Assembly (NCBI RefSeq): GCF_002571385.2
Contig: NW_019218411.1
Location: 81,750 to 145,749 of the forward strand
Direction: 5' to 3'
From: Stylophora pistillata
Taxonomy: Eukaryota
Length of the DNA: 64,000 nt
Each line of letters begins with the position of its first letter. The stretch's first letter is position 1. The notes below the pieces were generated by a model, which saw nothing but the letters and a program-made list of their open reading frames with translations, had not been told where the DNA came from and searched no databases. The translations under genes were made by a program, and so were the position numbers. Shown here in pieces: positions 1 to 56,304 of the stretch.

Positions 1-1020
1 AGCTGTGTCATCGCATCTCCTATAGTTCCAAGAGAGGTTAATATCATTGTACACTTTCTGACGTTCTTCACGTCTTTGACTGGAAACACCCTCCTCATCA
101 TTGCATATCTGAGAATGAACGAAGCGATACTGCTGCTCATTGCCAACATGGCTGCATCTGATCTTCTCTTAGCGCTGGTTCTTTTTCCTAGATGGATCAT
201 AATAGAAGTAACTGAGTCCTCCGAATTCCTCGTTCGCGGTAGTGGAGGCGCTTTTCTTTGTAAGATCTGCACTGTTCTAAGCGACGCATCATTGTCAGTG
301 TCAACCCAAAGTTTAATCTTGATCGCAGTCGAGCGGTTATTGGCACTGATAGCTCCTGTGCTGTATAGGAGGATAACCAATAAAAAAAGAAGAATTCTCG
401 TCATCTGCACTTGGATTGTGGCTATACTACTTCACTTGCCCTATTTCTATGTAATGCAACTGGTTTTAGTCCCTCACAAAGGTACCTTCATCCAAGTTTG
501 TGACCACGACTGGCAAACATTGTTTGAGGACAAAACAGCACATGTTCGTTATAGCATTTTTTTATTTACAACAGTTTTAGTTATACCTATTCTTATAATT
601 TGTGTCCTTTATGCTGTTATTATTATCACCCAACGAAATGACAAAATGGACACCAGTCGAAGTGAAAAGTCCGCAAGACGAAGGGAACAACGCGTCAAGA
701 AATTACAAAGGATGGCTGTAGCCACAGTAACTGCACTCTTTTTATGCTGGCCGCTTTACGTTATGATCGTTTTACACAGAATTGTCTCTCCGGAAACTGT
801 TCCTAAATGTAGTAAATTTTACAAGGTGGTGGATCACATTTCTCACATGATAGCGAGCTGTTATTGTGCAGTTAACCCTTGCCTTTGTTTCATTTTTATA
901 AAAAATTTTTCGCGTCAGCTTAGTTTTTTGTGTAAACGAAAATCTAATCGACAGCCGCTCGTAAAAAAAGTAATCGTACGAATGTCAGAAGGAGAGAATC
1001 TAGTTCTCTCAGCTTTCTGA
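1..1020 (+). CDS. Intronless class A (rhodopsin-family) GPCR, peptide-receptor-like; 5' end lies upstream of the window
   Basis: Frame is open from base 1 (SCVIASPIVPREVNIIVHFLTFFTSLTGNT...). Seven hydrophobic segments with TM1 GN, TM2 NMAASDLL, CKIC at the start of TM3, AVERL (DRY site), TM4 W, TM6 CWP and TM7 NPCLC. TGA at 1018-1020. Confidence 0.9.
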   Translation, partial: SCVIASPIVPREVNIIVHFLTFFTSLTGNTLLIIAYLRMNEAILLLIANMAASDLLLALVLFPRWIIIEVTESSEFLVRGSGGAFLCKICTVLSDASLSVSTQSLILIAVERLLALIAPVLYRRITNKKRRILVICTWIVAILLHLPYFYVMQLVLVPHKGTFIQVCDHDWQTLFEDKTAHVRYSIFLFTTVLVIPILIICVLYAVIIITQRNDKMDTSRSEKSARRREQRVKKLQRMAVATVTALFLCWPLYVMIVLHRIVSPETVPKCSKFYKVVDHISHMIASCYCAVNPCLCFIFIKNFSRQLSFLCKRKSNRQPLVKKVIVRMSEGENLVLSAF

Positions 1021-2271: not shown

Positions 2272-3560
2272 NTTTAATGACTGGGCGAAATCACGAAATC
2301 TCTCCACTCCTACCGACGTCATCTTTCTCGATCTTGCTAAAGCCTTTGACAGTGTCCCTCACGAGCGGCTGCTTTTAAAATTAAAAAGTAATGGCATCGA
2401 CGGTTGTCTGCTTAACTGGCTCAGACATTTTCTGGTTGGTCGCAAACAACGTGTAGTTATCAGGGGATCTTGTTCTGATTGGTCGTATGTAACCTCCGGC
2501 ACTCCACAGGGGACCATCCTTGGGCCTTTATTGTTTTTGCTGTATATTAATGACATAACAGAATGTGTATCGTCCACAATCAAATTATATGCAGACGATA
2601 CGAAGATCTATAGAGAGATAATTGACCCGATCACAGATTGTCAGCGTCTTCAGGAAGATCTTACCAATATTGGCGAATGGGCTTGTAAATGGCAATTACG
2701 TTTTAACGCGGATAAATGTCAATCTATGCGAATTACACATTCACGTGATAAGTCAGTGACCAATTATTTCTTTGGACAGCCCTTGAAAGACGTAGATAAA
2801 TTTAAAGATCTCGGTGTTATAATAACTAAGGACCTCTCATGGAGTAACCACATTGGTATAACTGTGAACAAAGCGAATAAAGTCCTAGGTTCTATTAAAC
2901 GCTCGATAGGCACCGCTAATGCAAATATTTTTTCTATGCTCTACAAATCTCTTGTACGGCCAATTTTGGAATATGTGGTACCTGTCTGGTGTCCTTACCT
3001 CGTCAAGGACATCCATGCTCTTGAGAATGTACAGCGAAGAGCTTCAAGACTTGCTTTAAATCAACGCAAAGGAGACATGTCCTACGAAGACCGATGCAAA
3101 TTGCTAAAATGGCCTACTCTTTCCGACCGTAGAACTTATCTATCTTTAATTGAGTGTTATAAAATTGTTTTTGGTTTTTACCATTTAGATTTTGGAACCT
3201 TTTTTGATTTTGCCACAACTAGATGTACGAGAGCAAATCATCAGTACAAACTTTACGTCAAACCAGCAAGACTTAATTGTTATAAACATTCGTTCTTCAT
3301 TAGGATTGTTAAATTATGGAATGAATTACCAAGAAACATAGTGGAAGCTGATAATCTTCAGCATTTTAAATCTCAGCTTAAATTGTATTTAAATATTTAA
3401 TTATAACTAAGTATTTTATTTTCATTTAGACTTATTTTTTAGGGAGTTTTCACATAGGGATAACCTCTTAACTTCCTTTTCTGGAAGCATATTTTCCATT
3501 TCCTCTTAGTGTATACATAGTCTGCTTCTGGAATAAATAAAGTATGTATGTATGTATGTA
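2272..3560 (+). mobile_element. CR1-clade non-LTR retrotransposon, 3' part (RT ORF 2273-3400 uninterrupted, 3' UTR, microsatellite tail)
   Basis: Open frame with FLDLAKAFDSVPH, GTPQGTILGPLLFLLYIND, YADD, KDLGV, LVRPILEY, LENVQRRA and FFIRIVKLWNELP; ends in AATAAATAAAG(TATG)n at ~3532-3560. Confidence 0.92.
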
Positions 3561-4783: not shown

Positions 4784-7002
4784 TTAAACATATGTTCCTC
4801 CCTTCTCACTCTCGGACTGCATCACCTTTAGTATTCGTTGGACTAACAGTCGTGCAATGTCGTTATGATCTGAATCCTTTGCTGGTTGGCCTTGCTCCGA
4901 CGCGGCAGCTCCTTCAGATTGGTCATCGTCAGGTGTTACACTAACTGCATCGTCAACTTCCTTTCCACCAGACTTCGGATCTTTAACTCTTTCTTTTCCC
5001 ACTGGTTTCTCCAGAGAGATTGAAATATTTTGGTCTTTTGTAGTACTCAATATGGCCTTACCATCAGGGAAATCGGATGGAAAATCTACAGCAAAATCAC
5101 GTTGTTTAAACTTTAGTGCAACGCAAAGATCGTGGGTGTCTTTGTCTCTACTTGTGCCAGTTATTTCAAACTTTTCCTGGAGAGCGCCATAGATCTTCCC
5201 AAAAAGTTCCATGCCTTCTTTCATTGAGTACCACTGTTCTCCCTTTGTTTCTGCTTGTTGCGATGAAGTTGAAGTCCAGTGTATCTCGCCTTTCACCGGT
5301 TCACTGTAATATTTCTTCTGATCCTTTTTATTGAAAGGATTACGAAGGCGGAAAGCACTGTCCCCCTTCAGTACCTCTGTAGAAATAAATTACGATGATT
5401 TTAGTACAATAAATGAAAGATATATGTGTTATTGACCAAGCGTGAGGTCAAAATGGCTGCGCGGATATTGGCCAGGTTCATTGTTGAAAGAACGAGGTTA
5501 ATATCCAGCCATCTGATACTGATTTAATATTTAATTTCTGTTTCTTGTATATGAATCTTTTGTTGAGCCGAATTTTATTTTAGATGTTTTAGCGTCCACA
5601 CACTACCCGCCGAGACTAGCTCTGCTATTTGTGGGTAGTGCGTCATTATGCTAAGTGTCATGTCATGTCTGATTACAATAAAATACAAAATACATCTCGC
5701 CCGAACAAGCTTGGTCAATAAAGTATTTATACGGCAAAAAAATTTCGCTTTAATATGAATCAAGACTTATTTATTTCGAGACCCGCCTTTGTAAACACCC
5801 ATGAAAAGGTTTATACGCAGCAAAACCTTCATTTGCGTTTAAAATTCTCACCATGATGATTTCATTTCTTTCTTCCCGATATGTACTCGTCTTTCAATCA
5901 TGGCTTTGACAGGGAAGAGAGTGTGTTGCGTGACGAGACCAAACAGCGGCTGTGAAGGAGATAATCTATTATCTTAACACACTACTCAGCAGTGTGTTGT
6001 AACCAATAATTTCTTCGACTGGCGAGTGGGCAGCTAATCTTGCAAAGTTTCCTATAACTCGGCAAGGTCCTAATCATTAAACGTCGTGATAACGACGACG
6101 CGTTTCTGCGTCGATACATGATAAAAATATTAGTGAATACTCTAACGGTGACTGCCTGGAAAAAAAAAATAGATATCTAAGGTTTTTACCGAGTATTCCC
6201 TTCAATGAGGTTTCCTTTTCGATGACACGAATTGGCTTCACGTCCAGTGTTTCATTGTCTAGACCAACCTTCATATAAACAAAGCAGGGCTTTTCTTTAT
6301 CCAGTTGATCCCCTAAAACAGAATATATGGATCATTAACCAAACAAAATGAGACCTAACAGTGAACTTTGCACTACCCGCAGAACAACATATGTGACTAT
6401 ACAGCTATTCCTCTAGGCTCATGGCTAACTCAGTGTGACGGACAAGACATCCTTTATTCTTATATTTCTAACATGAAATTTTTATTTTAAATAGAGGGAA
6501 GGGGTGAGTGAGAATTCTATTTCGTTTGCCCCTAAATCTGGGAAACTGATTCTATCAGCCTCACAACGTTTAGATTTCACGATCGTACGGTCAAAAATTC
6601 ATCTGCTTGTATAGGTTTTAAAAATATTCAGCATGGCGAATTACCCTCCCCAAAAATTGAATCAAAAGCGAAACAAACCGAACGGAAGTGGTACTTGTAA
6701 TTGTCTTTGGCGCTTAATGTACAGCGAACACTGTCAATCCCCCAATAAGAAACTGAATTTCGTTTCTTACCGCCAGATTCTTCTGTGCTCCAAATCCCAA
6801 CTCGTCGAAGAGCATGTTCTTCGAACAACTCTTCTATATCTTCACGTTTCAAGTCCTTAAGACTACCAGTGATATACTGCACGACTGGCTGATTGGAATG
6901 AGTCCACAGACCAAACATGTGTCCTCTTACAGACTTTTTATTCGCGATTTGTCGCTTAATCTGCTTCAGTTCACCCTCGTGGATTGTGACTGTCAGGCTC
7001 AT
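4784..7002 (-). CDS. 3-exon gene (~315 aa): degenerate prokaryote-type JAB/MPN domain fused to a truncated E2/UBC(RWD)-like domain. Exons 7002-6771, 6312-6190, 5376-4784
   Basis: ATG at 7002; GTAAG and GTAAA donors, TAG and CAG acceptors; both introns phase 1, joining three ORF-track fragments into one 948-nt frame. N-terminus LTVTIHEGEL...GHMFGLWTHSNQPVVQYITG...LRRVGIWS...EVLKGDSAFR matches the GGDLFGLWT...PVxxxxxGPG...HIGEWHSH...VLPGxSPFR pattern recalled for this JAB family. C-terminus has QWYS...LQEKF...FAVDFPSDFP. AATAAA on the minus strand at 4615-4620. Confidence 0.8.
5429..5721. repeat. Dispersed non-autonomous repeat with 13-bp inverted ends, in intron 2 of the JAB-E2 gene
   Basis: TTATTGACCAAGC (5429-5441) / GCTTGGTCAATAA (5709-5721). 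Confidence 0.6.
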
Positions 7003-7082
7003 CTTAACTCGTACTGTCAACCGAAAAAAGCAGTAAATAGACCGCAATAACTAAGCAGCGCGGGGAAAGCAGAGCAAAATGA

Positions 7083-8019
7083 TTTTCACTTTTATTATAA
7101 TAAACCTTTTCATGGGCCGTAAACAACAATTCTAAGAAACGGTTACGTCATGTGATCCGCTGAGCCTACCGGTTTTTCCCGGAAATGTTTACATGCTAGG
7201 ATATTCAGATTTTTGTTAAAGCGAATTTACGGAACGAGAGACAAAAGCTTGCATGACAAAGAAAAGTTACAGAAGAACTAGGATGAAAAACCGAAGCAAT
7301 CATTCACCGTGTCTAAATCCTATTTCTTTAGCCTGTCGAATCAAATCTTCGACGGAGCTTTATGAAAATCGCGAAAATTCGATCGGCTATTGCGAGGTTA
7401 AAAAATAAGACTGCGTCTAATTTATAGGAAAAGTGTGAGCTATTTCGGTTTCCAAATACAGTCACGACTGCAAGAAAAAAAAAAAAACTTTGATTTATGT
7501 AGAAAATAAAACCTAAAAACTTCGCTTTCTTTCGGATCAATCAGTTGATCCCGAAGTGTGTAGGATTATTCCATTATCTCGAAAGAAATTGTTATGGCGA
7601 ATCATGTTTTTGCCGATTTAAATTTTGCTGCACTCCTGTCTTTGTAACCCGCGTAAACGAAATGTTTTGGATTCTAGGAAAAAGGCCTGAAGAAGTACGC
7701 ATTTAACATGGCAGTCGTAATTACGAGCGACAAACACTCATCAATTCTGCCATACAACCAAATTTTTCGATGTGTCCTGTTGAAATTAAGGAGCAATAAA
7801 AATAACATAGATCCCATGATTTTTTTAAGCATGCAACATTTCTCTCGGCGCTATGAAGACATGACGTTTAAATTTTTGAATGGAAGAAAGGAATTAATTA
7901 ATAAATATAGTTTGCATACATGAAAAAAAACAAAGACAGACAAAATTATGTAACCTTATATGGCAATGCAGTCTTGCTTAAAGTGGGCATGACGTTATGA
8001 CTTTTCGTGGAAAATGAAA
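7083..8019. promoter_or_regulatory. Divergent promoter region with STAT (GAS) and IRF-like motifs at both ends
   Basis: Minus-strand AAAAGTGAAAA 7083-7093; TTCTAAGAA 7130-7138; TTACGTCA 7143-7150; TTTCCCGGAAA 7175-7185; TTCTAGGAA 7672-7680; TTCGTGGAA 8004-8012 overlapping GAAAATGAAA 8010-8019. Confidence 0.6.
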
Positions 8020-8200
8020 TAAAATTGCTGGTAGCATTCTATTCCCTCAAATTGATTCTTTGCGCATGTGCACGTCATCAATATTTCAAAACAATGTATC
8101 AATGTTAACAACTATAACTCTCCAGTCATTTAAACTGAAGGACCATTGCTGTGCACACCCTATCTCGAAAAAACAGCTAAAAAACAAACAGCTTTAAGTG

Positions 8201-8650
8201 ATGCCCTGGTCACAGGCCCAGAAACAGAGGCTCGGCTACGAGAAAACGGTTTTGGAGAACTATTTTCGCGACAGAGTGACATGGATTAGTCCCAGAGATC
8301 AAACGAAAGTGGAAGTTCGAGCCACATGCACCAACAATAGACAGTACACGTTGAGGATTTATCTGCCCTCTGATTTCCCCAATTCCTGTCCCAAAATGGT
8401 TGTCAAGGCATCGTCTCGACTGAGGGCGCGTAACGGAGATCTTTTAGAGCAGTATCCAGGTGACAACCATATCGGACAAACCGTAGAAGGCTACACAGGT
8501 ATCTGCCATTTTAGGCCAAATCGGTGGAGGAGCGAAAACACTTTGTACCAGGTGACCATGAAAGGTCTGATATGGCTGGAAGCTTATGAAGCGCATCTTC
8601 GCACAGGCCAACCCTTGAGCCAATTTTTGGTCACGATGCCAGATCGTTAA
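8201..8650 (+). CDS. Non-canonical E2/UBC-fold protein, copy 1 (149 aa, intronless)
   Basis: N-terminal helix QRLGYEK, YTLRIYLPSDFPNSCPKM (E2 beta3-PxxY/FPxxPP), NH...GICHF with putative catalytic Cys102 (8504-8506), W, TLYQV and C-terminal KGLIWLEAYEAHLRTG; conserved in two neighbouring paralogs. Confidence 0.85.
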   Translation: MPWSQAQKQRLGYEKTVLENYFRDRVTWISPRDQTKVEVRATCTNNRQYTLRIYLPSDFPNSCPKMVVKASSRLRARNGDLLEQYPGDNHIGQTVEGYTGICHFRPNRWRSENTLYQVTMKGLIWLEAYEAHLRTGQPLSQFLVTMPDR

Positions 8651-10380
8651 AAAACCAATTGTGGTTGGTGTTAGACAGAACGATTTGAGAGTTGTAAAAC
8701 CACACTGATTATAGAATTTATAGAGAAGCATAGCTTGCATTCATGCGATCGAGATTACTGAATTACAATTTTCCGATAGCGGGGTGTAGTATGAATGTAC
8801 GAGTGAGAATCCTGGTTATGGTTGTAAATAAATTACATAAATAAGGAGTTCCAGCGATGTCATTTGTTTTTCGTTCGATTATGAAAACAGTTAGGTATAC
8901 AAGGCTCTCTCTCAGTCCCAGGTAAATGAGCAGAAGAGCGATACAACCTCGTTCCCAGGGTCTCTCATCCTCCCGCCCCGAGGTCGAAGAGCGATGATAT
9001 TCAATTTAGAATTTACCAATGTTAGATGCTTATCTTAAAATCAGCATCCACTATACGAAACAACAAAAGCGACAACCAAATTGGCTTATAATTCAAAATT
9101 GTGTTTCTAGCTACGGTTTTTCTGTAAATTCATCCAGAAGTATTGAATAGCAAAATTCTTGGAAACCAGTGTAACTGATGGATGCAATACAATATTTCTG
9201 AGATAGAGTTTTTCTAAAAGTCTAATGCTGAACAGTGTTTATGTAAGTGCATTTGTCTGGTGTTGTGGTAGATCTTATTGGGAAATACCAATAACCACAT
9301 GGTGTAACTCCTTTCTTCTATGTGGCAGAAGCGATAAGAAAGCGTAACTAAATGGTTATGGCGTTCATTAGCAGCAAAAAATTCGGGAAGTTTGCACACA
9401 CGCATCTGTATTCCGCTTCGAAGAAATGATAAACTTATCTCCTCGGGTTACTTTGATTTTTCAGTCTTTTCTCAAAGAGTTATAATTTCTTAGGCGTAAA
9501 ATTCTCTAGGCTTCGAAGTCGCAAGTAAATAAAGGCAATTTGCAGCGAAAATTGGGCAACCAAGCTTTCCTTACACTCCACTGATGTAACGAGTTTTCAA
9601 GGTAAACTGAAATCTTGTTCGATTCTAAGAAAAACTCAAAAATTGTAAAATTAAATTTTGAGTCAAACTACCGGTATTTCCGAGAAACCTGTTTTTTTCA
9701 AGGGCATACGATATTTCTTTCACATTTTCAAGGATCTTTAATTTCCTTAAACTATTTCATACTTCCCTCTTTCTTTTAGTTACTGGCTAGTTTTACAAGA
9801 GTTCTGGGTCCAGTCCAGTATATACCATCTGCCCCAGCTCATTGCAAAGTCCTCATTTTCTCGCACTCCGACGTAGCTCTTGGGCATGAAAAACTTGTAG
9901 GTGAGACAAGGGTCTTGACCGCATAACAATTGATAGGTTAGAAACATTTTAGCTTAACTTCCGGAAGCCCGCTGTTGTTATTATCCTTTGTTTATCATAC
10001 CTTTGAGTTATGAGGCGCATTGTACATGTTCTCTTTAATCACCGTTCGATACAATGTAATTCTAAAATATGATAGATATTACGTTAGGAAAAAAAGTTGA
10101 AAAATTTTCTTTTCATATTCCTTATCCTTTCTTCTTTTAATATGGAGATGTTGCTCTTGTAGAAAGGCTCGACGAAGGGTCGGAATCAGCACGCGCAACT
10201 CAAGAACTGTTCATGGTCCAAATCAAGGCAGAATTCGTGCCCATATAATTTGTGCTTTAAAATTTTAAAATAGTCAGCTTTATTTTCCATTGAAATCAGA
10301 TGCAGAAAGAAAATAAATTACCTGCTGCAAAGAGTACCGGCCAGTCATGCATAAAAGGCTGTTGTGTTAAAAATAAAGTT

Positions 10381-10523
10381 TTCCACGAAAAACGCCTATC
10401 GGTTATTTACTTTTCATCTTCCTGAATTTCAAGGAACTAAGCAATGCTATCTGCGCATGCTCCAGTTTTCCGGGAAATCTGAAATGTGATGAGACAGTAG
10501 AAACAAAGCGGTTCGAATATAAA
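10381..10523 (+). promoter_or_regulatory. Promoter of E2-like copy 2: three GAS-type sites, ISRE-like site, TATA
   Basis: TTCCACGAA 10381-10389; TTCAAGGAA 10428-10436; TTCCGGGAA 10468-10476 overlapping GAAATCTGAAA 10474-10484; TATAAA 10518-10523. Confidence 0.6.
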
Positions 10524-10617
10524 GTTTCGCAACCGTTCACTGGCTCTGTATTCAGCGAGTGTTCCACGTTTGAAACTTCATGCAGGTAAACCGAAGTCGC
10601 CTTTTTTTTTCTTTAAA

Positions 10618-11061
10618 ATGCCATGGTCCGCAACTCAACGACAAAGGCTTGCATTTGAGAAAAATATTCTCGAGAAGTACTTCGGTACCAGAGTTTCATG
10701 GATTGATCCAACTCGCAATACAAGGGTTGAAGTAAGAGTGACAACCACCAGTGATAAACAGTATACACTCAGAGTGTATATTCCAACAGATTTTCCGAAT
10801 TCAGTTCCGCAGATGATTGTCAGTAACCCTTCGTCTTGTCTGAGAATGAAAAACGGTTCATCCATGAGCGGTAGGGATGGGCAAAACCACACTTTGAGCA
10901 GCATAGATGGCTGCACCCAGATCTGCCATTTTAACTCGTCCTTGTGGAAAGATAACAACACGTTGTACCAAGTGGTCATGAAAGGGCTTATATGGCTGGA
11001 AGGGTACGAAGCACATCATCGCACTGGGCAACCTCTGAGTAAATACTTGCAAGAGATGTAA
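10618..11061 (+). CDS. Non-canonical E2/UBC-fold protein, copy 2 (147 aa, intronless)
   Basis: ATG in AAAATG context aligns with the MPWS start of the paralogs; YTLRVYIPTDFPNSVP; NHTLSSIDGCTQICHF (Cys103 at 10924-10926); KGLIWLEGYEAH. Confidence 0.85.
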   Translation: MPWSATQRQRLAFEKNILEKYFGTRVSWIDPTRNTRVEVRVTTTSDKQYTLRVYIPTDFPNSVPQMIVSNPSSCLRMKNGSSMSGRDGQNHTLSSIDGCTQICHFNSSLWKDNNTLYQVVMKGLIWLEGYEAHHRTGQPLSKYLQEM

Positions 11062-11431
11062 ACAAATTGGCTGAGGACAGGAAAGGAATTGTTCATCAAG
11101 ACACACACGTATGTGTCAGTAACATTAATTCATACATTTATTTGATAAGATATTCAAAAAAAGCTAATTTAGCATTTCAGTCAAAATATATACTTCATCC
11201 AGTCCTAAATCTAAGTCATAATCAATAACCCAAACCGAAGGATCAAGGTTTAGGCACAAGTAAGAAGTCACATTGCTAAAACTTGACCTATTATACCTTT
11301 GAAACTCAGATTATTACTCGGGCTTTCCGAAGGAAAAGCCCGAAGTATAAATTCGGCTGTGTTTTTATTTAATTTTTGCGTTCAGTCACAAAACGTAGTT
11401 CCACTACAGCGCATGCGTACAATGTAAGCGC

Positions 11432-12700
11432 ATGCGTACAAGGAAGCCTAAAGCGCATGGTTTAAAGGAAGAAGGCAAATGGCTGACTTCCTGGACAATT
11501 CCTTGCTTGATGTATCCAAAAGAAATTCGATGGCTATTATGCCCAATGTATATACAAAGTCACACACCGCGGTCTGCACTAAAAGTTGTGGAGGGATTTG
11601 GGAACGGGTCGTTTCGCGAACTTTACGACAGATCAATTTACGAGGAATCCTTTATGAGTGAACGTTTTATCGAGAAATATCACGCGAAATCTGCTATATC
11701 AAATGAGTTATGTCATATTATGTTTACATGTAAACACAACCGTGTATTTAGACGTGATCGAGAACCCAGTAGAATACCAGAAGCTACTCTGAAACGTCTC
11801 AGAAGAAAGGGCGGAAAACTGAAGGAATTTGTTTATGTGCCGGTATTCGTCCAAGCATATGTACCGAAGTCCTCTTGGCTACGTCGTTATGTGAAGGTTA
11901 GAAGAGTTACAAAGAATGTTTGTAAGCTTGATACGAAGAGGGTAAGATTAAATAAAGGTACAAAACATGATAAGAAGTATTTGTTGAATTGTTCAGTGAG
12001 GGTGTATCAGAGGACAATGAAATTGAAGTATAGAGCAAGGTGGTATTTATCAATGTTTTCTTGTAATAGACCCTTGTGTCTTTACAAGAGTCAGACACAC
12101 GCGTCAAACTATTGAAAATTTCAACTGAGTTCAGATGTTGAGAAAAATCCTGGTCCCACTCCAATGTACATTGACCCTAGCAAATTAATAATGGCACCAT
12201 ATAGCCAAGCTAAGGAGTTGGTATTTGGACAAAATTCAGGACAACAATGTGTTGCATTGCGAGTTTATGCTCTTTGATTTACAATAACAAACAAGGAATC
12301 AATTCTGCTAATGCTCTCTTGTCAATGATGAGTATTTGCAATCAGTTGTATTCAAGTTTCTCTCAGTTAACCAAACAATAATTTTAATAATGCAGACAGA
12401 ATTACCCACACTTTTAAATGTGTGCAAGAATGAAGAACCTTTCAATCACTTTTATCCGAAAATTTCAACAATTTTGTCTTGACAACATGATGTACTGCAG
12501 TTGCTATCTATTGTAAAGGTAATGTGGGCTTAAAAATATTCGATTCTTGTGCAAAGGATATTTATTGTAGAAGCCATCCTCAAGGTACACGTGTGCTGCT
12601 TGAAGTATCATCACTGAATAGCTTAGTACATTATTTTCAGAGTATACATAACAATGACATATTTGAGTTGAAAGAGGTTAAAATTAACAAGAGTTCAAAA
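11432..12700 (+). pseudogene. Decayed Helentron ORF: basic N-terminal region, 2A-like peptide, herpes tegument-type (Herpes_teg_N/C76) deubiquitinase relic
   Basis: After the in-frame TGA at 12113-12115 the same frame reads KFQLSSDVEKNPGP (DVEKNPGP 12134-12157) then APYSQAKELVFGQNSGQQCVA. Frameshifted continuation reads SLCSLIY and KIFDSCAKD...HPQGTRVLLEV (FDSH degraded to FDSC at 12539-12550). Confidence 0.7.
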
Positions 12701-13223
12701 TAGTACCGTTTTTTAGAGTCATGCCTGTGAAACCAGAAAGTTCAATGTGAGTGGTGCTGTGCCTGTCTATTCACTCTGCTACTCCGTAATAAAATCATGT
12801 AGTTATTGGAATTCAAACACCTTATCTAATGTTATTCAGTATGGCAAAAGATTATATGAAAAGTCAATCCTTGAAAATCTTGTAAGAAATAATGGTGAAT
12901 GCACAGGGTTTTTGATGTGGTTTTCAGTTTTTTGTATGACGTATTTTTAAACCCACAAAAAGGTCAAAATATGTGTCTTAGTATTTAATGAAGGTCAAAT
13001 GCCTCTTATTGAATATACTAAAACTGTAAATAGCACTACTTCTCTTGTTGGGGCCATCAAAAATATTCAATATTCAGAGATTTTTCTGTTAAAAACAATA
13101 TGAACTACTGAACATTAATATTGCTTCAATATACTGATTTCTGACAACTCCCTTTGGGTGATCATTTAATTTGGCAACAAACTATGACTCGGTACCAATA
13201 ATAGATGAAAAATTCCCTTCTCC

Positions 13224-13425
13224 TTCCAGTTAAAGGCAAATACATAACCTACTCAAGGTTTGTAAGAGCCTTGAAAGTCCTTGAAGGTGCTTAAATTTTA
13301 AAATAAAGAATTCAATGAATTGAATTCAATGAATTCCAGTTAAAGGCAACCTACTCAAGGTTTGTAAGAGCCTTGAAAGTCCTTGAAGGTGCTTAAATTT
13401 TAAAATAAAGAATTCAATGAATTGA
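13224..13425. repeat. ~100-bp direct tandem duplication inside the Helentron
   Basis: TTCCAGTTAAAGGCAA...CCTACTCAAGGTTTGTAAGAGCCTTGAAAGTCCTTGAAGG...GAATTCAATGAATTGAA at 13224 and 13334. Confidence 0.85.
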
Positions 13426-14895
13426 AAGTACTTGAATTTGAGGACTAGGGCTTGATTTTTGCAATGCTTTTTCTAAGCAATTTTCAAGTTGAAAATAACA
13501 GAACTTTCATGGAAAAGCTGAGAAATAATATAAAATGATTTTAAAATTGCTTATGCAAACCTTTCCAAAAGTGGTCCTTCAATTCTCTAAAACTTGGCCT
13601 TCAAAGTCGTTGAAAAGTCCTTGAATTTGAACCCTTGGTATCTGTAGTAACCTACTCCTATATAGTAATCTATTATTTTGATTGATATCTAGTACCATAA
13701 CAACATTCATTACACTCCAGCAAACAAAAATAAACAGAAGTTGACTTATTCATGACCGGCAAAGACGGAATTGCGTGACGACAGTAATATGGCAGTCCCC
13801 TAAAAATAACTTCAGATGTGCGATATTGAAAGCCCGAGTTCACGCGGCTATGCGTCTAGTTAATTAAGAATAAGCATTTTTCTATGTTTCACTTTCATGT
13901 TTCATTCTATTCCTACCAACTCTTTGAGAGTTGGGCGAAGGATCTTATTTCAAGTGTTAAAGCAATTTCGTGAGGGACTCGATCACATCCAATGACCTCC
14001 GAAAATACATTTGTACGATTTCGAAGGAGTCTTTTAGGTTTGCTCGAAAGAAAGAATTATTTGCATTGGAAGTAGAATCTTGCGTGTGAAACTCTTATCA
14101 CTCGTACCGCGCACTGATTTGTTTCCATTTCAGTCGGTTCATTTTGGAAACAGTGTTTGAATAGCTGCGGTAGCTCAGACTAATACCAGTTAAGCTTAAG
14201 AAATTGGTCGGAAGGGGTCAGCTGGCGTGACTCTGACGTTGCTGATCCGTAAGAGTGGGAATCTTGTAAGAGTCGCAGGTAAGTAGCTTTTTAGAGAAAA
14301 AAAAAAAAAGGGATCCGTAAAGTGGCTTCATCTTCCAGCCCGTCCAATAAATTTGTGGTGCTTGCATAAGGTTCACAACGGACCATTCCGGAACCTTTCG
14401 GTTATTTCTATATACAGTAGACGAATTAGATCTTTCGCTCTCCAACTTTGAGTACTATTTCTCGAGGCAAAGCTTGTTAAAGACCAAAAAACATTGAGGA
14501 AGGCTATTTTTATGCCAATGATTCCCGACATTTCCTGCAAAATGATTGGAAGATTTAAGGGATTTAATCCGTTTATTGTTATTATGAACATTTTATTATG
14601 AACTGTAGTCAAAGATAAATGTAAATAATCTCAGTCAGCACTTGCTTAAATATTTAATACAATACATTCTAGGCGAAGCTTGAGCGTGAGCCCACATGGG
14701 GATGTATATAGGGATGCAAGGAAAGTGGAGAGAAGGGAGGAGAAGGGGGGTCCATAGGCATGCTGCCGCTAGAATATTTCGATTTTCATTAGACGAAGAT
14801 GACAACATAGTAGCCTCCAAAAATTAATTTTTTTTATCAAAAACTAAAACAACTATCCCCAGTGAGTTAAATTGAAAAATTACATAAGAAGTTGA

Positions 14896-15045
14896 TTAGC
14901 CCTTTAACTCCAATGAGTGACCAAGACAGAATTTCTCCTTACAATATCATTACAATATCAGGCAGAAAAGATATGACAACAAAGAAAAATATCACTCACG
15001 GGATTACCAGTTGATCCAATAACTAATTCTCCGAACTAATGAATT
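14896..15045 (+). repeat. MITE-like fragment (TTAA-CCCT start) at the end of duplication unit 1; second copy at ~17654-17800
   Basis: CCCTTTAACTCCARTGAGTGACCAAGACAGA...ATATCAATACAATATC...AAATTCTCCGAACTAA present in both units. Confidence 0.6.
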
Positions 15046-15334
15046 AAATTATACAATATTTCTTCATCTTTTCAACGATTTTTCCTCGGACGACTTTCAT
15101 ATTTCCTTCATTATTGGGTATTTTCATAACAGTTCTGGGTCCACTCCGGTACGGTCCTCTCCGCCCTGGCTCACTGCAAAGTTCTCATTCCGCCGAGCAT
15201 GGGCATGAATAAGTTTTAAATGAGACAAGGAACTTGAACCATGACAGCGAAACAATGGAAAGGTCAGTAACATGCTCCCCGAACTTGCGAAAGCTAATTG
15301 TTCACTATTCGATGCAGTAGTATTGAACAGTACT

Positions 15335-15475
15335 GGCCGAATTCTGTACAGGCCTGAATTTTTTCAGTTCTGATTTTCACTACTGCTTAAATAGTGCTCT
15401 TTATTGCGAGGATCGTGTACAAATACGTTTCTATAACCGCAGTTCAGATATATGAATTTCATATATTAGTACAGT
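15335..15475 (+). repeat. SINE-like dispersed repeat fragment present only in duplication unit 2
   Basis: GTACAGGCCTGAATTTTT...CACTACTGCTTAA...CCGCAGTTCAGATATATGAATTTCATATATT; missing from the aligned region of unit 1 (~10050-10075). Confidence 0.5.
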
Positions 15476-15735
15476 AGATATCATGTTAGAGTAAAAAAAG
15501 TTGTAACTCTTTCTTTTCATTTTTCCTTTTTCCCTTTCCTGAGTAATCTAATTGCGATTTTGCCGTTATAGCACAGCTCCGTCGACGAAGAGAAAATCAG
15601 CGCGTGCAATCTAAGAGTTAAATTTCACTTTTTTCAATTCAATTTTTCGTTAGATCAGAAAGAAAGTGAATTATATGAGCCGCAAAGAGCAGCAGCCAGT
15701 CAGGTATAAAAGACTGTTGCAATATAAACAAACTT

Positions 15736-15838
15736 TTCCACGAAAACGGCCACGCATCGTTTACCTCAAGTTCTTCCTGAATTTCTAAGAGCTGGGCAAT
15801 GCTATTTACGCATGCTCCAGTTTCCGGGAAAACTGAAA
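15736..15838 (+). promoter_or_regulatory. Promoter of E2-like copy 3: GAS sites plus overlapping IRF element
   Basis: TTCCACGAA 15736-15744; TTCCGGGAA 15822-15830 overlapping GAAAACTGAAA 15828-15838. Confidence 0.6.
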
Positions 15839-15968
15839 TGTGATGAGAACAAAAGCAAAGCGGTTCGGAAATAGCTCAGTTCGCAACATTCATTGGCTTT
15901 AAATTTAACGAGTGTTTCTCGTTGAAACTTCTACGGACAAACCGAAGTCGCCTTTTTCTTTCTTCAAA

Positions 15969-16412
15969 ATGCCGTGGTCAGCAGCTCAGCAGAAAAGACT
16001 TGGATTTGAGAAAAATATTCTCGAGAAGTACTTCGGTAACAGAGTTTCGTGGATTAATCCAACTGGTGCTACGAAGGTCGAAGTGAGAGTGACGACCACC
16101 AGTGATAAACAGTATACACTTAGAGTGTATCTTCCCGGAGATTTCCCGAATTCAGTCCCGAACATGATCGTCAGTAACCCTTCGTCCTGTCTGAGAAAGA
16201 GAGACGGTTCTTCGATGAGCGGTGGGAGCGGAAGTGATCATACATTGAGTAGCATAGATGGTTGTACTCAGATCTGCCATTTCAAAGCAGACTTATGGCG
16301 AGATAATAACACACTGTACCAAGTTGTCATGAAAGGGCTGATATGGCTGGAAGGTTACGAAGCACATCTTCGAACCGGGCAACCTCTGAGTAAATTCTTG
16401 CAAGAGATGTAA
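15969..16412 (+). CDS. Non-canonical E2/UBC-fold protein, copy 3 (147 aa, intronless)
   Basis: 25 differences from copy 2 over 147 aa (hand count); YLPGDFPNSVP; DHTLSSIDGCTQICHF (Cys103 at 16275-16277); KGLIWLEGYEAH. Confidence 0.85.
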   Translation: MPWSAAQQKRLGFEKNILEKYFGNRVSWINPTGATKVEVRVTTTSDKQYTLRVYLPGDFPNSVPNMIVSNPSSCLRKRDGSSMSGGSGSDHTLSSIDGCTQICHFKADLWRDNNTLYQVVMKGLIWLEGYEAHLRTGQPLSKFLQEM

Positions 16413-33928: not shown

Positions 33929-36900
33929 ATGGATTCTTCACCGTCTCTTTCAATGAAGGCAAATGCTTTCTCTATAGCCTCTCTGATGTCCTCTAGAGAT
34001 GATCGAGGCGATTTTGGTAAGAGCATAAAACCGACACAAGTATTTTGACGCACTTATCAGCTAAGTCATCCGTTTTGAGATTCTGACAAAGTGGCGTAAA
34101 TTTTGAGTGTTTTAGAGAGTTGGTTCGAAGCATTACTTAAAGGTCACAGCTAAATATGTGTTTTTTAAATCATTTAATTCTCTAGATCCAAAATCGTCTC
34201 CAAAAGAAAGAGCAGACAGTGTTTCTGAAGAAGAAACTACTCAACCGCCGCCGGCAAAGAGGATGAAGTCTTCGTCAAGCGAGGAGACCATCGAAGACAA
34301 AGAAAGTGGGAAAGAGTTAGAAAACTCTTATAAGGACGAACTTAGGAACATAACCGTTGAATTGGAAGGAAAAGAGTTATGGGAGAGATTTAGTGAACTT
34401 GGAACTGAAATGATCATTACCAAGGCTGGAAGGTGAGGTGCATTGAAAGTCGTCTGTGGCGCACTAACCTGGAAAAGCCTTTGCGTTTTGTGTAGTGCCA
34501 CCAACTGATCTCTTCCCTAACCGCTTGTAAATCGGTGTCGGAAATCAAAGTTGTTAAAAAGATAACAAGCTGTTTTATAAACAGCATCTACAGGTTTGGA
34601 TAAACATAAATACGGCTCGTTATTGATGCTTCCTACCGGGTAAATTATCACATTCACGCACACAAACCACTGGACTGAAAGTTTTGATTTCTTATCTGAT
34701 AAGCGATGTTAAGGTGCTATGTCGATGATTTAATTTGCCAGACCCATAACAGAAATAACCACATATTTTGAGCGCGCCCATGACTTCTTCTTTCCAAACA
34801 ATCCTTGACAGAATTTTTCTCTTTTTAGGCGCATGTTTCCCACACTAAGAATATCTGTGAACGGTGTTAACCCTAAAGCAAATTATATGGTCTTGATGGA
34901 TATAGTGCCAGTTGATGACAAACGCTACAGATACGCCTACCACCGTTCGACTTGGCTTGTGGCAGGTAAAGCTGATCCACCAGCGCCTGTAAGACTCTAC
35001 ATGCACCCAGATTCCCCTTTTACTGGCGAGCAGTTGTTAAAACAGATCATATCATTTGAAAAAGTTAAACTGACCAACAACGATGGCGACCGTAATGGAC
35101 ATGTAAGTAAACCGTATTTTATATTCAGTATTACAGATAGAACTTTAATGATCTACCCTGGTCTTAAGGATAATTTTATGTACCTTCATTCTACCTTAAA
35201 TTCTCACCCCTTGCGATATAATTTGTCTCCCTCCAGGGGCACATACAGTCTAACAACAGTTGACAAAGAGCTGTTCTGTTCAAAATATCAGATATTGGAA
35301 AATCAAGGTGCTTTGGCAACGAAGAACAGTGCTAAAACTTTAAGAAATTTAATATCCAATCGAAAAATAATCATCTTTTTCGGCCATAAGAGGCCCGAAT
35401 CCTGCACAATTGGGGACACTATTCAAGTTTACAAGCTGTTTCCCTCAGGTCAAACTATCATACCACATCAAATTATTTTCTATTGGGCAGGGTTATTGAT
35501 TAGCCTTGTTTTTTGACATTACAGCTCATTCTAAATTCCATGCATAAATACCAGCCTCGAGTGCATATTATTCGTAAACGTGACCACACAGCTTCTGTAA
35601 TTAATCTCAAGTCCGAGGAGATGAAAACCTTCACCTTTCCAGAAACGAATTTCATTGGGGTGACAGCGTACCAAAATCAACTGGTGAGTAATTTTCCACG
35701 GGTTAGGTGCTTCGTGAAATATCACATTTTTAACCCAGGCGCTATTGGTAGCATTTGTAAACTTATGTAGCACTGACTGATATAACAGACAAATTGTGGG
35801 GAACCAAAACGTTATTCCCTTGTTTCACGCTATAATTAAATTATCATTTAATTAGGACAAACGCATGCAACCTCAAGAATTCATCTCAAGGATGTTCATC
35901 TCCCTAACCATCTAGCGACAAATTATGGCTTTTCTGTTACTTGACACACTGTTTATAGGGTGCAGCTCAAACTACTATGTAAAAGAGTTTGTTCAGAAAT
36001 AAAAAGGATGTTTTACGGCGACAAACACAGCCGGATTGATATTGTAATCGATGACCTATAATTATCAATTGTAATTTAAAAAAAAGAACTTATAGGAACG
36101 GTCGATCGTGATCGAAATATATTTCAATATATCTAGAATTCACAAAGACGGATGTGGGTAAAAAAAAAAAATAACACACACACACACACGCACACACTAG
36201 CTTTCCTATTAACATCTTTGTCGGTTTCAATGCGCGAGATCCTTTCTTAATAACATATTTTAAAACCACCAATGTCCGTCTTTATTTTTCCGTTTTGTAG
36301 ATCACACGATTAAAAATAGATAGCAATCCATTTGCCAAAGGTTTCCGGGACTCATCACGTCTTATTCCAGTAGAAAGGTAGGAGTTAGAACTCCGGAAAA
36401 TAAATACTCTTTTCAAGAGTTGAACTTGCCAAAGAAAAAATTATACATCGACAATATCTCAAAGCAATTAATGGTTAAAGAAGTACAGCTCTTTGTTTTT
36501 TCACAGTAGGTTTTCTTGTAGTTAACACCTTCGTTCACGTCTTTCTCTTTATTTAACTTTTTGCTTTTATACTTTATAAATTAACGCATCGACTCTTCTT
36601 TGTCACGGTTGAGTGAGAATTCACCTGAGTGAAATTAACTCTTGCTGCTCTTCGCTGATTTGAAAAACAAAAGCTAAAATGATTACAAATGCTTGTGCAT
36701 AGGATCCCTGTGAAACTCTTACACGTATGTGTTCATAAACCATTATTCAATTTAATTCTATCTTCACCTTTTATTTTAATTTCAGAGACTGTTTTCATGA
36801 AAGTCACCCACCTACAATGGTTACAGACCCGTTGTATCCTTCCCTTCCCTTTCCGCTGATACCACAGCTAGGGGTTAACAGCAGATACCAACTTCCCAAG

Positions 36901-54613: not shown

Positions 54614-55786
54614 TCATGATAGAATGTCCACAGAAATAACTGCGCAGGATGTTTTTGCTGGTTCTTCATATGAAGATTTTAATGGGAACTGCTTTCTGCG
54701 AAGCGGGACATTGCTTGTATCACAGTCTTGCAACCTTTTCAGTTTTCTACCCTTTGCTATGGAAGTTTTAATATTTCTTTTACCCGTCATAACTTTTAAT
54801 TCACGAAAAAATCTTGGAATGAATGAAAAGCAAAGCCATGGATTAATTGCACAATAACAACTTGCCAATAGCCACGCGATGTAAGACACAGTCTCGAAGC
54901 TTTTGTTACACATAGGAACCGCCCAAGGTGGAAAAAGGCTTATAAAACTTATCACGATATGTAGCGTCCAACAAATAAAAAAGGAAGCAACCGTAGCGAT
55001 GGCCATCCTAAGAAGATTTCGGGTGCATTCCCGTCTCTGTTTCGTTCCCTTTTCACTTCGACATGACAACATTTTGTCATCCCGAGCGTGAAAAGCGATG
55101 ACAGTGTACAAAGCGGAAATAAGAAGCAATGGCAGAATCAACACGGTAGTAAATAGAAATATGCTGTAGCGACGACGTGCTAATCTGTCATCGAAAGCTG
55201 GTTCCCAATTTTGTTGACATACTTGTATATAATGACCCTGATTGTCAACAACTTTGGCCAGTCGACAAGTGTAAAAATACGGCGAGTGAAACGCTGCAGC
55301 TAAGATCCAAGTTGAAGCGACAAGAATGGGGCATCTTTTGGAGGAGGTCGACCTATAGAGAAGAGGACATGCAACTGCAAGGAATCGCTCAACGGCGATC
55401 ATGACTAAGCTCAAGGTTGAGACAGACAACGACATATCGCTAACGAAACTACAAATTTTGCAAAGAACTGTGCCTCCAATTCCGTGGACGAGGAAAGCAT
55501 TGGACTTGGTGATTTCTTCTGTGATAAGGCGAGGAAGTAGAAAAATCGCTACAAGTAGGTCGGATGCAGCCATGTTAGTAATTAATAGCAGCCATTTTTC
55601 TTTTATCCTCACAGAGGCGACGATCAATAGGAGGTTTCCAACTAAAGATCCTAAAAACGAGAAAAAATGTATCGCGATAGAAACATGACTGTGACTTAAT
55701 CTATTACTGCACTGTTCAGTAGAGGTCGTCTCGTTGTTTGAACTTAATTCGAGGTGATTAAACGAAGCATTTTCAATGGCTGCCAT
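54614..55786 (-). CDS. Intronless class A GPCR (390 aa), paralog of the GPCR at 1-1020
   Basis: ATG at 55786 (MAAIENASF, N-glycosylation sequons); GN, NMAASDLL, CKIC, AVERF, YSIFLFTTVL, CWTL, ASCYCAINPWLC. Confidence 0.92.
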   Translation of the reverse strand: MAAIENASFNHLELSSNNETTSTEQCSNRLSHSHVSIAIHFFSFLGSLVGNLLLIVASVRIKEKWLLLITNMAASDLLVAIFLLPRLITEEITKSNAFLVHGIGGTVLCKICSFVSDMSLSVSTLSLVMIAVERFLAVACPLLYRSTSSKRCPILVASTWILAAAFHSPYFYTCRLAKVVDNQGHYIQVCQQNWEPAFDDRLARRRYSIFLFTTVLILPLLLISALYTVIAFHARDDKMLSCRSEKGTKQRRECTRNLLRMAIATVASFFICWTLHIVISFISLFPPWAVPMCNKSFETVSYIAWLLASCYCAINPWLCFSFIPRFFRELKVMTGKRNIKTSIAKGRKLKRLQDCDTSNVPLRRKQFPLKSSYEEPAKTSCAVISVDILS

Positions 55787-56304
55787 AACTTCGCGTTGTA
55801 ACAAGCTGTGTCAAAAAACTCTCTCAAGGGTAAGGCCAACTAAGAAGCCCCTTTCAATTATCGCACGCAACAGTGATTTGTTAGCGATATCTGGTTTGGC
55901 TTCCCTTGGCAGAAATCTAAACTGTTTTGGTGAACACAGCCTTCTACGACAATACACATCCGCCCAATGCTTCCTGCGTAAATGATAAATTCGCTCATTT
56001 ACCGTTGGAATAAAGATGAACTTTATCACGCAATACGTTAGAAAATTTGCCGCACCAACTAGAAAATATCACAAAAAAAACAATGTCGATAGCTTTGACT
56101 GCCTTTTTCTCACTGTGCAAACAATGAGTGGGAAGATGATTGCGGTATAATGGACGGTGCATGATTCACAAACTGTCGAATGAAGACAAACGTCGCCATC
56201 AAAATGATTTCTGTATCCTTCAAATCCGACAGTTTACTCAATTATTGAATTTCAAACCACTCAAACTTCATTTGAAAACTGTCCTTTAACACCTTCTTTA
56301 GACA

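Follow-up and report, generated by a model that had tools for sequence, protein, structure and literature searches.

Why should a coral genome carry a cluster of genes that looks like part of a prokaryotic ubiquitin-like conjugation pathway? The question is raised by 64,000 nucleotides of Stylophora pistillata DNA (RefSeq assembly GCF_002571385.2, contig NW_019218411.1, positions 81,750 to 145,749, forward strand). This whole stretch is called the window here, and its positions are counted from its first letter. A preliminary description, made from the letters alone, had placed in it a JAB/MPN-E2 fusion gene beside three divergent E2-like genes, and had read them as what may be a bacterial module acquired or retained by the animal and domesticated for innate immunity. 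Bacterial operons that encode E1, E2 and JAB proteins (type II cyclic oligonucleotide-based antiphage signalling systems or CBASS, Bil and Bub) have recently been shown to be antiviral conjugation systems, and are discussed as relatives of eukaryotic ubiquitination.

The answer proposed here is that the window is probably, although not securely, a satellite cluster of a four-component conjugation system of bacterial origin that resides in the Stylophora nuclear genome. Two lines of comparison carry this proposal. Judged from sequence, the coral E2, the JAB with its C-terminal domain (CTD), an E1 and a small peptide are established as homologues of the four genes of one bacterial operon. In addition, the genes are clustered in coral, octocoral and sponge.

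The E2-like and JAB-like genes of the window

The cluster consists of a JAB-like gene on the minus strand and three E2-like open reading frames (ORFs) on the plus strand, all four at the positions first reported for them. The JAB-like gene is divergent (head-to-head) from the first E2 ORF, at a distance of 1.2 kb. The features are as follows.

4784..5376, minus strand: exon 3 of the JAB-like gene, from the ORF and the acceptor site; encodes the LxGxSxFR motif, a linker and an RWD/UBC-like CTD (QWYS...DFPSDFP)
6190..6312, minus strand: exon 2 of the JAB-like gene, between an AG acceptor (6314-6313) and a GT donor (6189-6188); completes the JAB-like domain, the translation matching residues 78-118 of the database protein P0097
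6771..7002, minus strand: coding exon 1 of the JAB-like gene, from its ATG (7002) up to a GT donor (6770-6769); the larger part of the degenerate JAB/MPN domain (MSLTVTIHEGEL...VGIWSTEESG)
7117..8121, no strand: divergent intergenic region of about 1 kb between the JAB-like gene and E2a, with no RNA coverage at 7300-8099
8201..8650 (ORF from 8198/8201), plus strand: E2a, an intronless UBC-fold gene of 149 amino acids from its ATG; His-x11-Cys-His (ICHF) and WLEAYEAH..TG; transcript about 8122-8973
10618..11061, plus strand: E2b, an intronless UBC-fold gene of 147 amino acids, from the ORF and a structural model; RNA over its 5' end
15969..16412, plus strand: E2c, an intronless UBC-fold gene of 147 amino acids, from the ORF; a recent paralogue of E2b, to which it is 83% identical

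The three E2-like proteins are 57-83% identical among themselves. The E2 motifs described earlier, including a lone His 12 residues before the Cys and a C-terminal helix, are real and conserved. PxDFPxxxP, ICH[FY], the His 12 residues upstream of the Cys and WLE.YE.H..TG are kept across 20 coral homologues, in which Cys103 and His104 (E2b numbering) are invariant or near-invariant. The His, the Cys and the helix Trp remain invariant when 33 more distant sequences are added (35 bacterial and coral, one of them a named bacterial protein). Two database homologues have lost the Cys. The canonical HPN motif is indeed absent, and in its place the proteins read H-T/I-L/G.

Are these proteins E2s? The window proteins have only sub-threshold matches in Pfam, to RWD, UQ_con, UEV, FANCL_d2 and Prok-E2_E. 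The UQ_con (PF00179) scores are 13.8-16.7 bits against a gathering threshold of 27, and the matches are partial, so these are not canonical eukaryotic E2s. The E2 fold anticipated in the preliminary description is adopted: an AlphaFold2 (AF2) model of E2b, with a predicted local distance difference test (pLDDT) score of 89.7, has a helix at residues 5-25, four strands, a hairpin and a helix at 116-136, which is UBC topology. The top 50 Foldseek matches of this model are all E2s (probability 1.0, TM about 0.5). In a VIA structural search the model scored Z 8-10.8 against UEV, E2 and RWD chains, with the Tsg101 UEV (Z 10.8), the CdnG-E2 of Serratia CBASS (Z 10.2, 129 of 147 residues) and Citrobacter BubB (Z 10.2) among them. 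The active-site features of a catalytic E2 are also present, namely a Cys in the loop after the beta-meander and a nearby His. A possible named family is E2-CBASS (PF26395), which is carried by 24 of the 30 nearest ESM Atlas clusters and has precomputed or faint matches on homologues (P0038 and an Oculina gene). The local Pfam scan of the window proteins listed no PF26395 match.

The window E2 genes are under purifying selection. E2b and E2c differ with a dN of 0.099 and a dS of 0.63 (dN/dS 0.16), and E2a is 80% identical to its Oculina orthologue, with a dN/dS of 0.09.

The JAB-like gene has a different history. Its splice model is matched by a 315-residue database protein (P0097) with 97% identity and the same structure. 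Pfam, NCBIfam and PADLOC scans of P0097 gave no family. Its N-terminal 80 residues do align with a bacterial JAB (L001:6823-7953; BLASTP E=6e-11) that itself matches the Prok-JAB and PADLOC JAB models, and tblastn with the window gene matched four proteobacterial JABs (4e-9 to 2e-5). The alignment reveals what has been lost. Bacterial 'ETGGDLFGFW' corresponds to coral 'SVRGHMFGLW', and bacterial 'VGTWHSHHRLGL..PS..D' to coral 'VGIWSTEESGG'. In other words, ETGGD has become SVRGH and WHSHH has become WSTEE, which means that the JAMM Glu and both His ligands are gone. The same catalytic-site loss is seen in P0098, P0105 and the Montipora protein P0106, all from other corals. Read from these residues, the window JAB is a predicted pseudo-enzyme.

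What is the second half of this protein? The preliminary description called it an E2 domain like those encoded next door. A profile-profile comparison (hhalign) of the CTD with the window E2 family gave a probability of 1% and E=0.054, which is not significant. The claimed resemblance therefore lacks sequence support, and by fold it is weak: the VIA matches of the CTD include FANCL, Ubc9 and UEV structures (Z 6.5-7.4) and BRE but also unrelated folds, all below Z 8 (6-7.6). The CTD has a pattern of its own, QWYS...G..LF.KI......F.ITGTSRD..THD......F.V.FP..FP, and is followed in exon 3 by a disordered acidic tail, a terminal helix and the stop codon. The window protein aligns with bacterial JAB proteins over both of its domains. 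Since the bacterial JABs carry both the CTD and the 'LPGxSPFR' motif that precedes it, the two-domain architecture is inherited rather than assembled in corals. Thus the JAB homology of the supposed fusion stands, as does the reality of a spliced, expressed gene. The Glu and the His-x-His are lost from it, and its second domain is the bacterial CTD.

Four sets of RNA data, two polyA RNA-seq assemblies of separate studies and two runs of raw reads, served to follow transcription over a 6-kb stretch from the JAB-like gene through the start of E2b, with E2c outside. All four contain the joints 5376|6190 and 6311|6770, GT-AG when read on the minus strand. Exon 3 has an RNA depth of 59-129 in contigs, with strand-consistent raw reads. 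The RNA contigs end at 7058-7116, which takes the 5' untranslated region of the JAB-like gene to about 7116. E2a is covered by RNA contigs at 8122-8973 and 8144-8824 and by raw reads on the matching strand. Reads run in opposite directions over the JAB-like gene and over E2a, and the transcripts begin on either side of the intergenic gap. This region of about 1 kb is presumably a bidirectional promoter.

All of this is host DNA, as had been argued from the introns and the animal transposable elements. The window has spliced polyA transcripts, a GC content of about 0.38-0.40 all along its length, G-protein-coupled receptor (GPCR) genes, a T-box exon and retroelement fragments.

A bacterial four-gene operon and its animal counterparts

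Where do such genes come from? Among 1.84 billion representative proteins, 476 clusters (50% identity) matched a profile built from the E2 family at E <= 1e-3. A named relative at E=4.6e-20 is a Caldisericota cluster, from Candidatus Cryosericum hinesii (WP_119087992.1). On four Cryosericum hinesii metagenomic contigs the order is a JAB (355-376 amino acids), an E2 (136 amino acids), a 66-amino-acid protein and a ThiF E1 (419 amino acids). The same genes occur at four proteobacterial loci and at two cyanobacterial loci (Nostoc and Halomicronema). The proteobacterial loci came from one narrow pattern search, so their count says nothing about prevalence. The order is JAB-E2-peptide-E1 in L001, L023 and L024 and E1-JAB-E2-peptide in L015-L017. 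The prokaryotic character suspected for the window genes is thus borne out: they have bacterial E2 relatives at E of about 1e-20, and in Caldisericota, Cyanobacteria and Proteobacteria these relatives adjoin a ThiF E1 and a homologue of the window JAB.

The bacterial E1 and E2 are separate genes at the loci examined. The E1 has a single ThiF domain with CxxC...CxxC zinc motifs (ThiF/MoeB-type). The JAB, E2 and E1 match the PADLOC CBASS models for JAB, E2 and E1-E2, the JAB and E2 weakly (E 1e-5 to 1e-10). The fourth gene encodes a small protein (60-140 amino acids) with one or two copies of a module of about 40 residues, ELVFDPxTGxLxV...(PD)xVxAxxMAxEGFF, and then a short variable tail. It is probably non-globular, and a Pfam scan of one example (L001) gave no family. 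The module is fused to the E1 N-terminus in several cyanobacteria, and in other matches to the E2 N-terminus. Among the called genes and ORFs of L001, L015-L018, L023 and L024 there was no CD-NTase, nucleotide-activated effector or other conserved fifth gene.

Both cyanobacterial operons adjoin a gene for a STAND-type NTPase. In Nostoc (L023:8646-12221, minus strand) a 1191-amino-acid STAND NTPase with NB-ARC and WD40 domains lies directly beside the operon, and in Halomicronema (L024:8456-15302, plus strand) a 1537-amino-acid protein and an AAA_16 protein do. The STAND NTPase neighbours hint at a conflict or defence context for the bacterial parent system.

Does the coral have the rest of the pathway? 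The preliminary description had noted that no E1 is visible and that host UBA1 and ubiquitin, or unlinked partners, would be needed. The window indeed has no E1. The genome does have them, and a search with the bacterial E1 found two.

C112:303774-305063, minus strand: E1 copy 1, intronless
C332:85804-87102, plus strand: E1 copy 2, intronless

The two coral E1s (429 and 432 amino acids) have one ThiF domain and the CxxC...CxxC motifs, are 47-51% identical to the bacterial E1, and each lie 2-6 kb from an E2 copy. With E1s in the same genome, there is no need to call on host UBA1 and ubiquitin. Six E2 copies are present in the assembly, three in the window and one each on C53, C112 and C332. A search with an intact coral JAB located at least 10 further JAB copies on C112, C293 and C2626. 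The E/HSH/S..D motifs are complete in the three that were examined. Paralogues on C112 and C293 score 24.8 and 29.2 bits against Prok-JAB (PF14464), for which the cutoff is 25.

The peptide gene was harder to find. Neither a strict ...GFF regular expression applied to the coral loci nor a single proteobacterial peptide searched against the coral genome found one. Only a profile of ten bacterial modules succeeded. Run against all six frames of the 398-Mb assembly, it gave a single match (E=0.014) at C112:302576-302674, which is 1.1 kb from an E1. The ORF there (C112:302519-302761, plus strand) encodes 80 amino acids, MSSNPQRIQQHLENRGSGSEALVFDPATGKLMVKPQQEAQSSDRTVMLDMNKSGSGGFFNYIVYADDW..., and its N-terminal part also matches bacterial proteins. 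A near-identical 80-residue protein from Pocillopora damicornis (RMX52539.1, in the same 90% cluster) is annotated as hypothetical and occurs on dozens of contigs. Local profile searches found further peptide copies in the C332, C112 and C293 clusters.

On C112 all four components come together, with the peptide (plus strand), the E1 (minus strand), two JABs (minus strand) and an E2 (plus strand) within 9 kb. The JAB and E2 are head-to-head, as in the window. This core cluster spans C112:294900-313000, and its JAB and E2 genes are these.

294939-295364 and 296821-297330 of C112, strand not stated: JAB copies
306797-307420 and 308692-309543 of C112, minus strand: JAB genes; 308692-309543 is an intact copy
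310575-311021 of C112, plus strand: E2, head-to-head with a JAB

An open frame of 202 amino acids at about C112:312345-312950 (minus strand; no stop, start not set) contains two FDPxTGxL modules, and two longer ORFs with peptide modules lie at about C112:290046-290420 and 292667-293080. A second expansion cluster occupies C293:141000-173000. Several of its intact JABs have long disordered tails that are acidic or Lys-rich (for example L007:6486-8348, 620 amino acids). It also includes a pseudo-JAB+CTD gene (L012:5944-6834, XP_022797922.1), a protein of four tandem CTD repeats (L007:1699-2973) and an ORF with the peptide module (L007:5404-5628, minus strand). NCBI models in the same 90% cluster fuse some of the C293 genes into a 'putative serine/threonine-protein kinase' of 812-1114 amino acids.

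The arrangement is not peculiar to Stylophora. In Oculina patagonica (CM126639.1) five E2 genes are head-to-head with a JAB-like gene, which is followed by a GPCR, and coral contig L020 has the order GPCR, JAB-like, E2, E2. A homologous GPCR flanks the cluster in both, so the GPCR-JAB-E2 neighbourhood is conserved among corals. E1, JAB, E2 and peptide genes are clustered in the octocoral Dendronephthya gigantea and the sponge Oscarella lobularis, where the peptide profile matched at 4e-13, 5e-11 and 3e-7. JAB-E2 linkage, on which the earlier reading depended, is therefore found in a second coral, on L020, in an octocoral and in a sponge.

How old is the animal system? Named E1 relatives come from Scleractinia, Actiniaria, Octocorallia, Oscarella and one EukProt transcript, and then from cyanobacteria and Caldisericota. 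The named E2 and E1 matches include none from bilaterians, fungi or plants, only Anthozoa and one sponge (one EukProt record is unplaced). A maximum-likelihood tree was built from 118 E1 sequences. It unites the animal ones in a single clade (SH-aLRT 100) that is sister to cyanobacterial E1s (94), with Caldisericota outside this pair and Proteobacteria most distant. Within the animal clade the sponge group branches first, then the octocorals, then Actiniaria plus Scleractinia, which broadly follows the species tree. The C112 and C332 genes correspond to two paralogous scleractinian subclades. A single animal clade sister to cyanobacteria points to one ancient transfer. The E2 tree groups the named animal copies, with the exception of one divergent octocoral copy, in a single clade (90) that is separate from the named bacterial E2s. 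There the window E2s belong to a coral-specific subclade that is derived relative to the E1-linked E2s, although the E2 tree is weakly resolved.

Bacterial kinship and operon-like linkage support the idea of acquisition. The distribution, which had been expected to be patchy, is not that of a recent acquisition: from the E1 tree it looks like one old transfer followed by vertical inheritance in Anthozoa and at least one sponge. The window genes are domesticated host genes, lying in host DNA with spliced polyA RNA and conserved synteny, and with the animal E1s forming a clade beside cyanobacteria.

A candidate tagging mechanism and its competitors

What might the system do? The ancestral bacterial operon would have encoded a JAMM/JAB peptidase with a CTD, a minimal His-x11-Cys-His E2, a peptide-module protein and a single-domain ThiF E1. 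An early animal would have gained the entire four-gene set. Anthozoans and at least one sponge would have kept the clustering, and corals would have duplicated parts. On this proposal the C112 cluster would be the core, with the peptide, an E1, intact JABs and one E2, and the window would be a satellite with three E2 paralogues and the JAB+CTD gene that lacks a metal site. As for the chemistry, a JAB might trim the peptide tail after GFF, E1 would adenylate the new peptide C-terminus, and the peptide would be handed as a thioester to the E2 cysteine (Cys103 in E2b). The peptide would then be ligated to targets, and intact JABs would reverse the ligation. The three window E2s may have different target specificities. 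By analogy with the MPN-minus subunits in Rpn11/Rpn8 or BRCC36/Abraxas, the pseudo-JAB could serve as a partner or reader without catalysis. The STAND NTPase neighbours and the lineage-specific expansion make a role in defence or conflict plausible. The immune role once suggested for the window module is speculation.

Taken to its conclusion, the argument is that early animals (a homoscleromorph sponge and anthozoans) keep a complete bacterial pathway that tags with a short, probably disordered peptide instead of a beta-grasp protein. It would use a MoeB-like E1, a Cys-His E2 and JABs for trimming and removal. It would be a second E1/E2 tagging system in animals, independent of ubiquitin, and its coral families would have expanded as those of an immune or conflict system do. 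This fuller version is a tentative one, a real possibility that falls somewhat short of being probable.

Several observations do not fit comfortably or leave the case weaker than it might be. The window has neither an E1 nor a peptide gene, its best match to the peptide profile being E=1.9. The peptide has no beta-grasp look and no C-terminal Gly-Gly, and so its modifier role is drawn from its position alone. The E1s end in FFG or FFS, and the conjugated C-terminus could be that of the E1 itself or of another protein, compare the CD-NTase of CBASS. All of the E1, E2 and JAB enzymatic steps are inferred from the genes. The JAB-like fold is poorly predicted: the AF2 model of P0097 (12-row alignment) has an overall pLDDT of 56, and it is residues 170-240, a helix and beta-meander, that reach 73-86. 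Residues 1-126 of this low-confidence model matched MPN structures in a VIA search at Z 6-7.3, which is suggestive. Evidence for a defence role comes from the gene neighbourhood at just two cyanobacterial loci. The E1 and E2 trees are unrooted and from a quick search, the E2 tree is weakly resolved, and the E1 tree is drawn with a midpoint root, so that its root is not established. Finally, the eukaryotic range of the homologues is known from few named records and is thus uncertain.

What if the bacterial origin is correct and the peptide is not the modifier? This is the main alternative. It is unlikely, yet deserves serious attention. What E1 and E2 conjugate would be the C-terminal end of a larger protein, perhaps the FFG/FFS tail of the E1 or that of an unlinked effector, and the peptide would only dock or regulate, as an adaptor, inhibitor or decoy. 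The E1 C-termini are what makes this attractive. They end exactly in FFG in cyanobacteria and in FFG plus one or two residues in the octocoral, the sponge and the EukProt sequence, with FFSS... in Stylophora. The N-terminal fusions of the peptide module to E1 or E2 place GFF internally, which is odd for a free modifier. Furthermore, the nearest sequence models are those of CBASS JAB, E2 and E1-E2, and the ESM Atlas neighbours lead to Pfam E2-CBASS. Against this, the seven bacterial loci examined showed no CD-NTase or other conserved fifth gene, and the peptide is the sole other component conserved from bacteria to animals. A modifier fused to an E2 and released by a JAB also has precedent in Bub operons (10.1101/2024.11.21.623953). 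The FFG/FFS ends of the E1s echo the GFF motif of the small peptide.

A second alternative, close to the fallback of the preliminary description, is that the window cluster has left the bacterial pathway. Host UBA1 or UBA6 would load its E2s with ubiquitin or with a ubiquitin-like protein (Ubl) of the host, or the E2s would be non-catalytic, UEV-like binders. That the window has no E1 or peptide gene, that its E2s form a coral-specific clade apart from the E1-adjacent E2s and that two database homologues lack the Cys would all be expected if this were so. Nevertheless, none of the three window copies has lost the Cys-His or the upstream His, which are near-invariant in the family. Their dN/dS is 0.09-0.16, and the genome still has cognate E1s and peptides, which are conserved. 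HPN is absent, and the UQ_con scores are far under threshold. Departure of the window from the pathway is accordingly improbable.

It could also be imagined that these genes are a vertically inherited, divergent branch of the eukaryotic UBC/UEV/RWD proteins, with the bacterial likeness due to convergence or to transfer from eukaryotes to bacteria. The best Pfam matches are to the eukaryote-rich RWD, UQ_con and UEV families, the top VIA match is the Tsg101 UEV, and the trees are unrooted. However, every one of those Pfam scores is sub-threshold. Outside animals the strongest relatives come from bacteria, where they belong to four-gene operons, and each of the three remaining operon genes has a coral homologue too. 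The bacterial spread covers at least Caldisericota, Cyanobacteria and Proteobacteria, with the animal E1 clade beside cyanobacteria, and the named animal matches are confined to Anthozoa and one sponge, with none in bilaterians, fungi or plants. Vertical descent is very improbable. Contamination of the assembly by bacterial DNA, which could be suspected because introns are lacking from the E2, E1 and intact JAB genes and the identity of the E1 to bacterial proteins reaches 51%, is refuted by spliced transcripts (two GT-AG introns of the JAB-like gene are removed in polyA RNA) and conserved synteny (the same arrangement is in the chromosome-scale Oculina, Oscarella and Dendronephthya assemblies), besides contigs of 0.37-1.0 Mb, a GC content equal to that of the rest of the window and the GPCR, T-box and retroelement sequences there, and it hardly merits consideration.

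The satellite-cluster proposal thus remains the preferred one, and what follows if it is correct? An operon type that was not found described is complete in animal genomes, with its four genes present, clustered, expressed and under purifying selection. It would be a rare transfer of an entire bacterial multi-gene pathway into animals, apparently kept for hundreds of millions of years, and a candidate ubiquitin-independent protein-tagging pathway in corals and sponges. E1/E2 chemistry would be widened to a short peptide without the ubiquitin fold. If the peptide is the tag, there is a substantial chance that this is more than a variant of the bacterial E1/E2/JAB systems. Corals are under heavy disease and bleaching pressure, and a lineage-expanded, defence-like system in them is therefore of practical interest.

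Known systems and other features of the window

How does the system compare with those already described? Type II CBASS (Cap2 E1-E2 and Cap3 JAB; CdnG-E2, PDB 8hsb; PF26395) likewise has a ThiF-type E1, a minimal E2 and a JAB and works without a beta-grasp Ubl. However, Cap2 is a fused E1-E2, whereas E1, E2 and JAB are separate proteins here. The coral and bacterial JAB described above has an extra RWD/UBC-like CTD. In addition, the CD-NTase and cyclic-nucleotide effector were not seen in the bacterial or animal loci examined, which have the FDPxTGxL...GFF peptide gene instead.

Bil (operon type 6d of Iyer et al., 2006, PMC1779556) shares separate E1, E2 and JAB genes and a small conjugated protein. 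Its E2, like those of the window, is without the canonical HPN and has a conserved His besides the Cys. The differences are in the other components. The Bil modifier is a beta-grasp Ubl ending in Gly and not a short peptide module without beta-grasp character. The Bil JAB has an N-terminal alpha+beta domain, whereas the extra JAB domain here is C-terminal. The Bil E1 has inactive, active and Cys domains, in contrast to the one ThiF domain, the CxxC zinc motifs and the different N-terminal domain found here.

Bub (6E/DUF6527) is also a bacterial E1, E2 and JAB system. Its modifier can come as a fusion to E2, from which the JAB frees it, and its BubB is among the top folds found with E2b (Z 10.2). 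Bub systems form serine oxyesters and have DUF6527 serine proteases and beta-grasp Ubls (10.1101/2024.11.21.623953). Here, in contrast, the E2 Cys does not vary, and the operons examined showed no gene of DUF6527 type. The gene composition is absent from the five operon types of Iyer et al. (2006, PMC1779556) and from Bil and Bub in the form in which Ye et al. (2024) describe them. Of the bacterial systems named in the preliminary description, neither Bil nor CBASS is the closest one. The parent system is a different operon type with a short peptide of seemingly non-beta-grasp form.

For the pseudo-JAB there are eukaryotic analogies. In Rpn11-Rpn8, BRCC36-Abraxas and Ubc13-Mms2 a dead JAB/MPN or a Cys-less UBC-like domain stands beside an active paralogue. 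These MPN and UEV pairs are kin of the window genes by fold only, whereas the domain pair of the window gene comes from a bacterial JAB-CTD protein.

One component may have been noticed before. An anthozoan 'thif family protein' (Seriatopora_20479) was tabled as a candidate for transfer from bacteria (Bhattacharya et al., 2016, PMC4878875). This gene is probably the present E1, matched by its description only. The paper has the table entry alone, with no E2, JAB, peptide, clustering or sponge copy. Apart from this entry, no description of the operon type or the animal clusters was found in full-text searches of the openly readable literature.

The remainder of the window is ordinary animal DNA, and its features are given below.

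76-1020, plus strand, and 54614-55804, minus strand: intronless rhodopsin-family GPCR genes (Pfam 7tm_1, E 1e-33 to 1e-37)
2531-3400, plus strand, and 63009-63710, minus strand: transposon remnants with a reverse-transcriptase fragment (RVT_1) and an integrase core (rve)
11432-12115, plus strand, between E2b and E2c: basic ORF of 227 amino acids without a Pfam family, perhaps open by chance or left by a decayed mobile element
34833-35516, plus strand: exon for the middle of a T-box DNA-binding domain (Pfam T-box, E=1e-28)
62035-62511, minus strand: ORF of 158 amino acids without a Pfam family, adjoining the transposon remnants

Two spikes of RNA depth, at 8943-8980 and 5459-5552, have many loose ends and opposite-strand joints in all four runs. 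They are typical of short interspersed repeats present in many transcripts and are not features of the genes. Elaborated relatives of the E2s (P0109, P0124, P0126, P0138 and P0114-P0119) also exist in the databases. Some, among them P0109, P0124 and P0126, have two tandem E2-like domains (308-320 amino acids), and others, among them P0114-P0119, have one such domain with a long Pro/Lys-rich tail that ends ...PPPVKPKPRRP (247-520 amino acids). Both kinds are encoded on large contigs of eukaryotic look.

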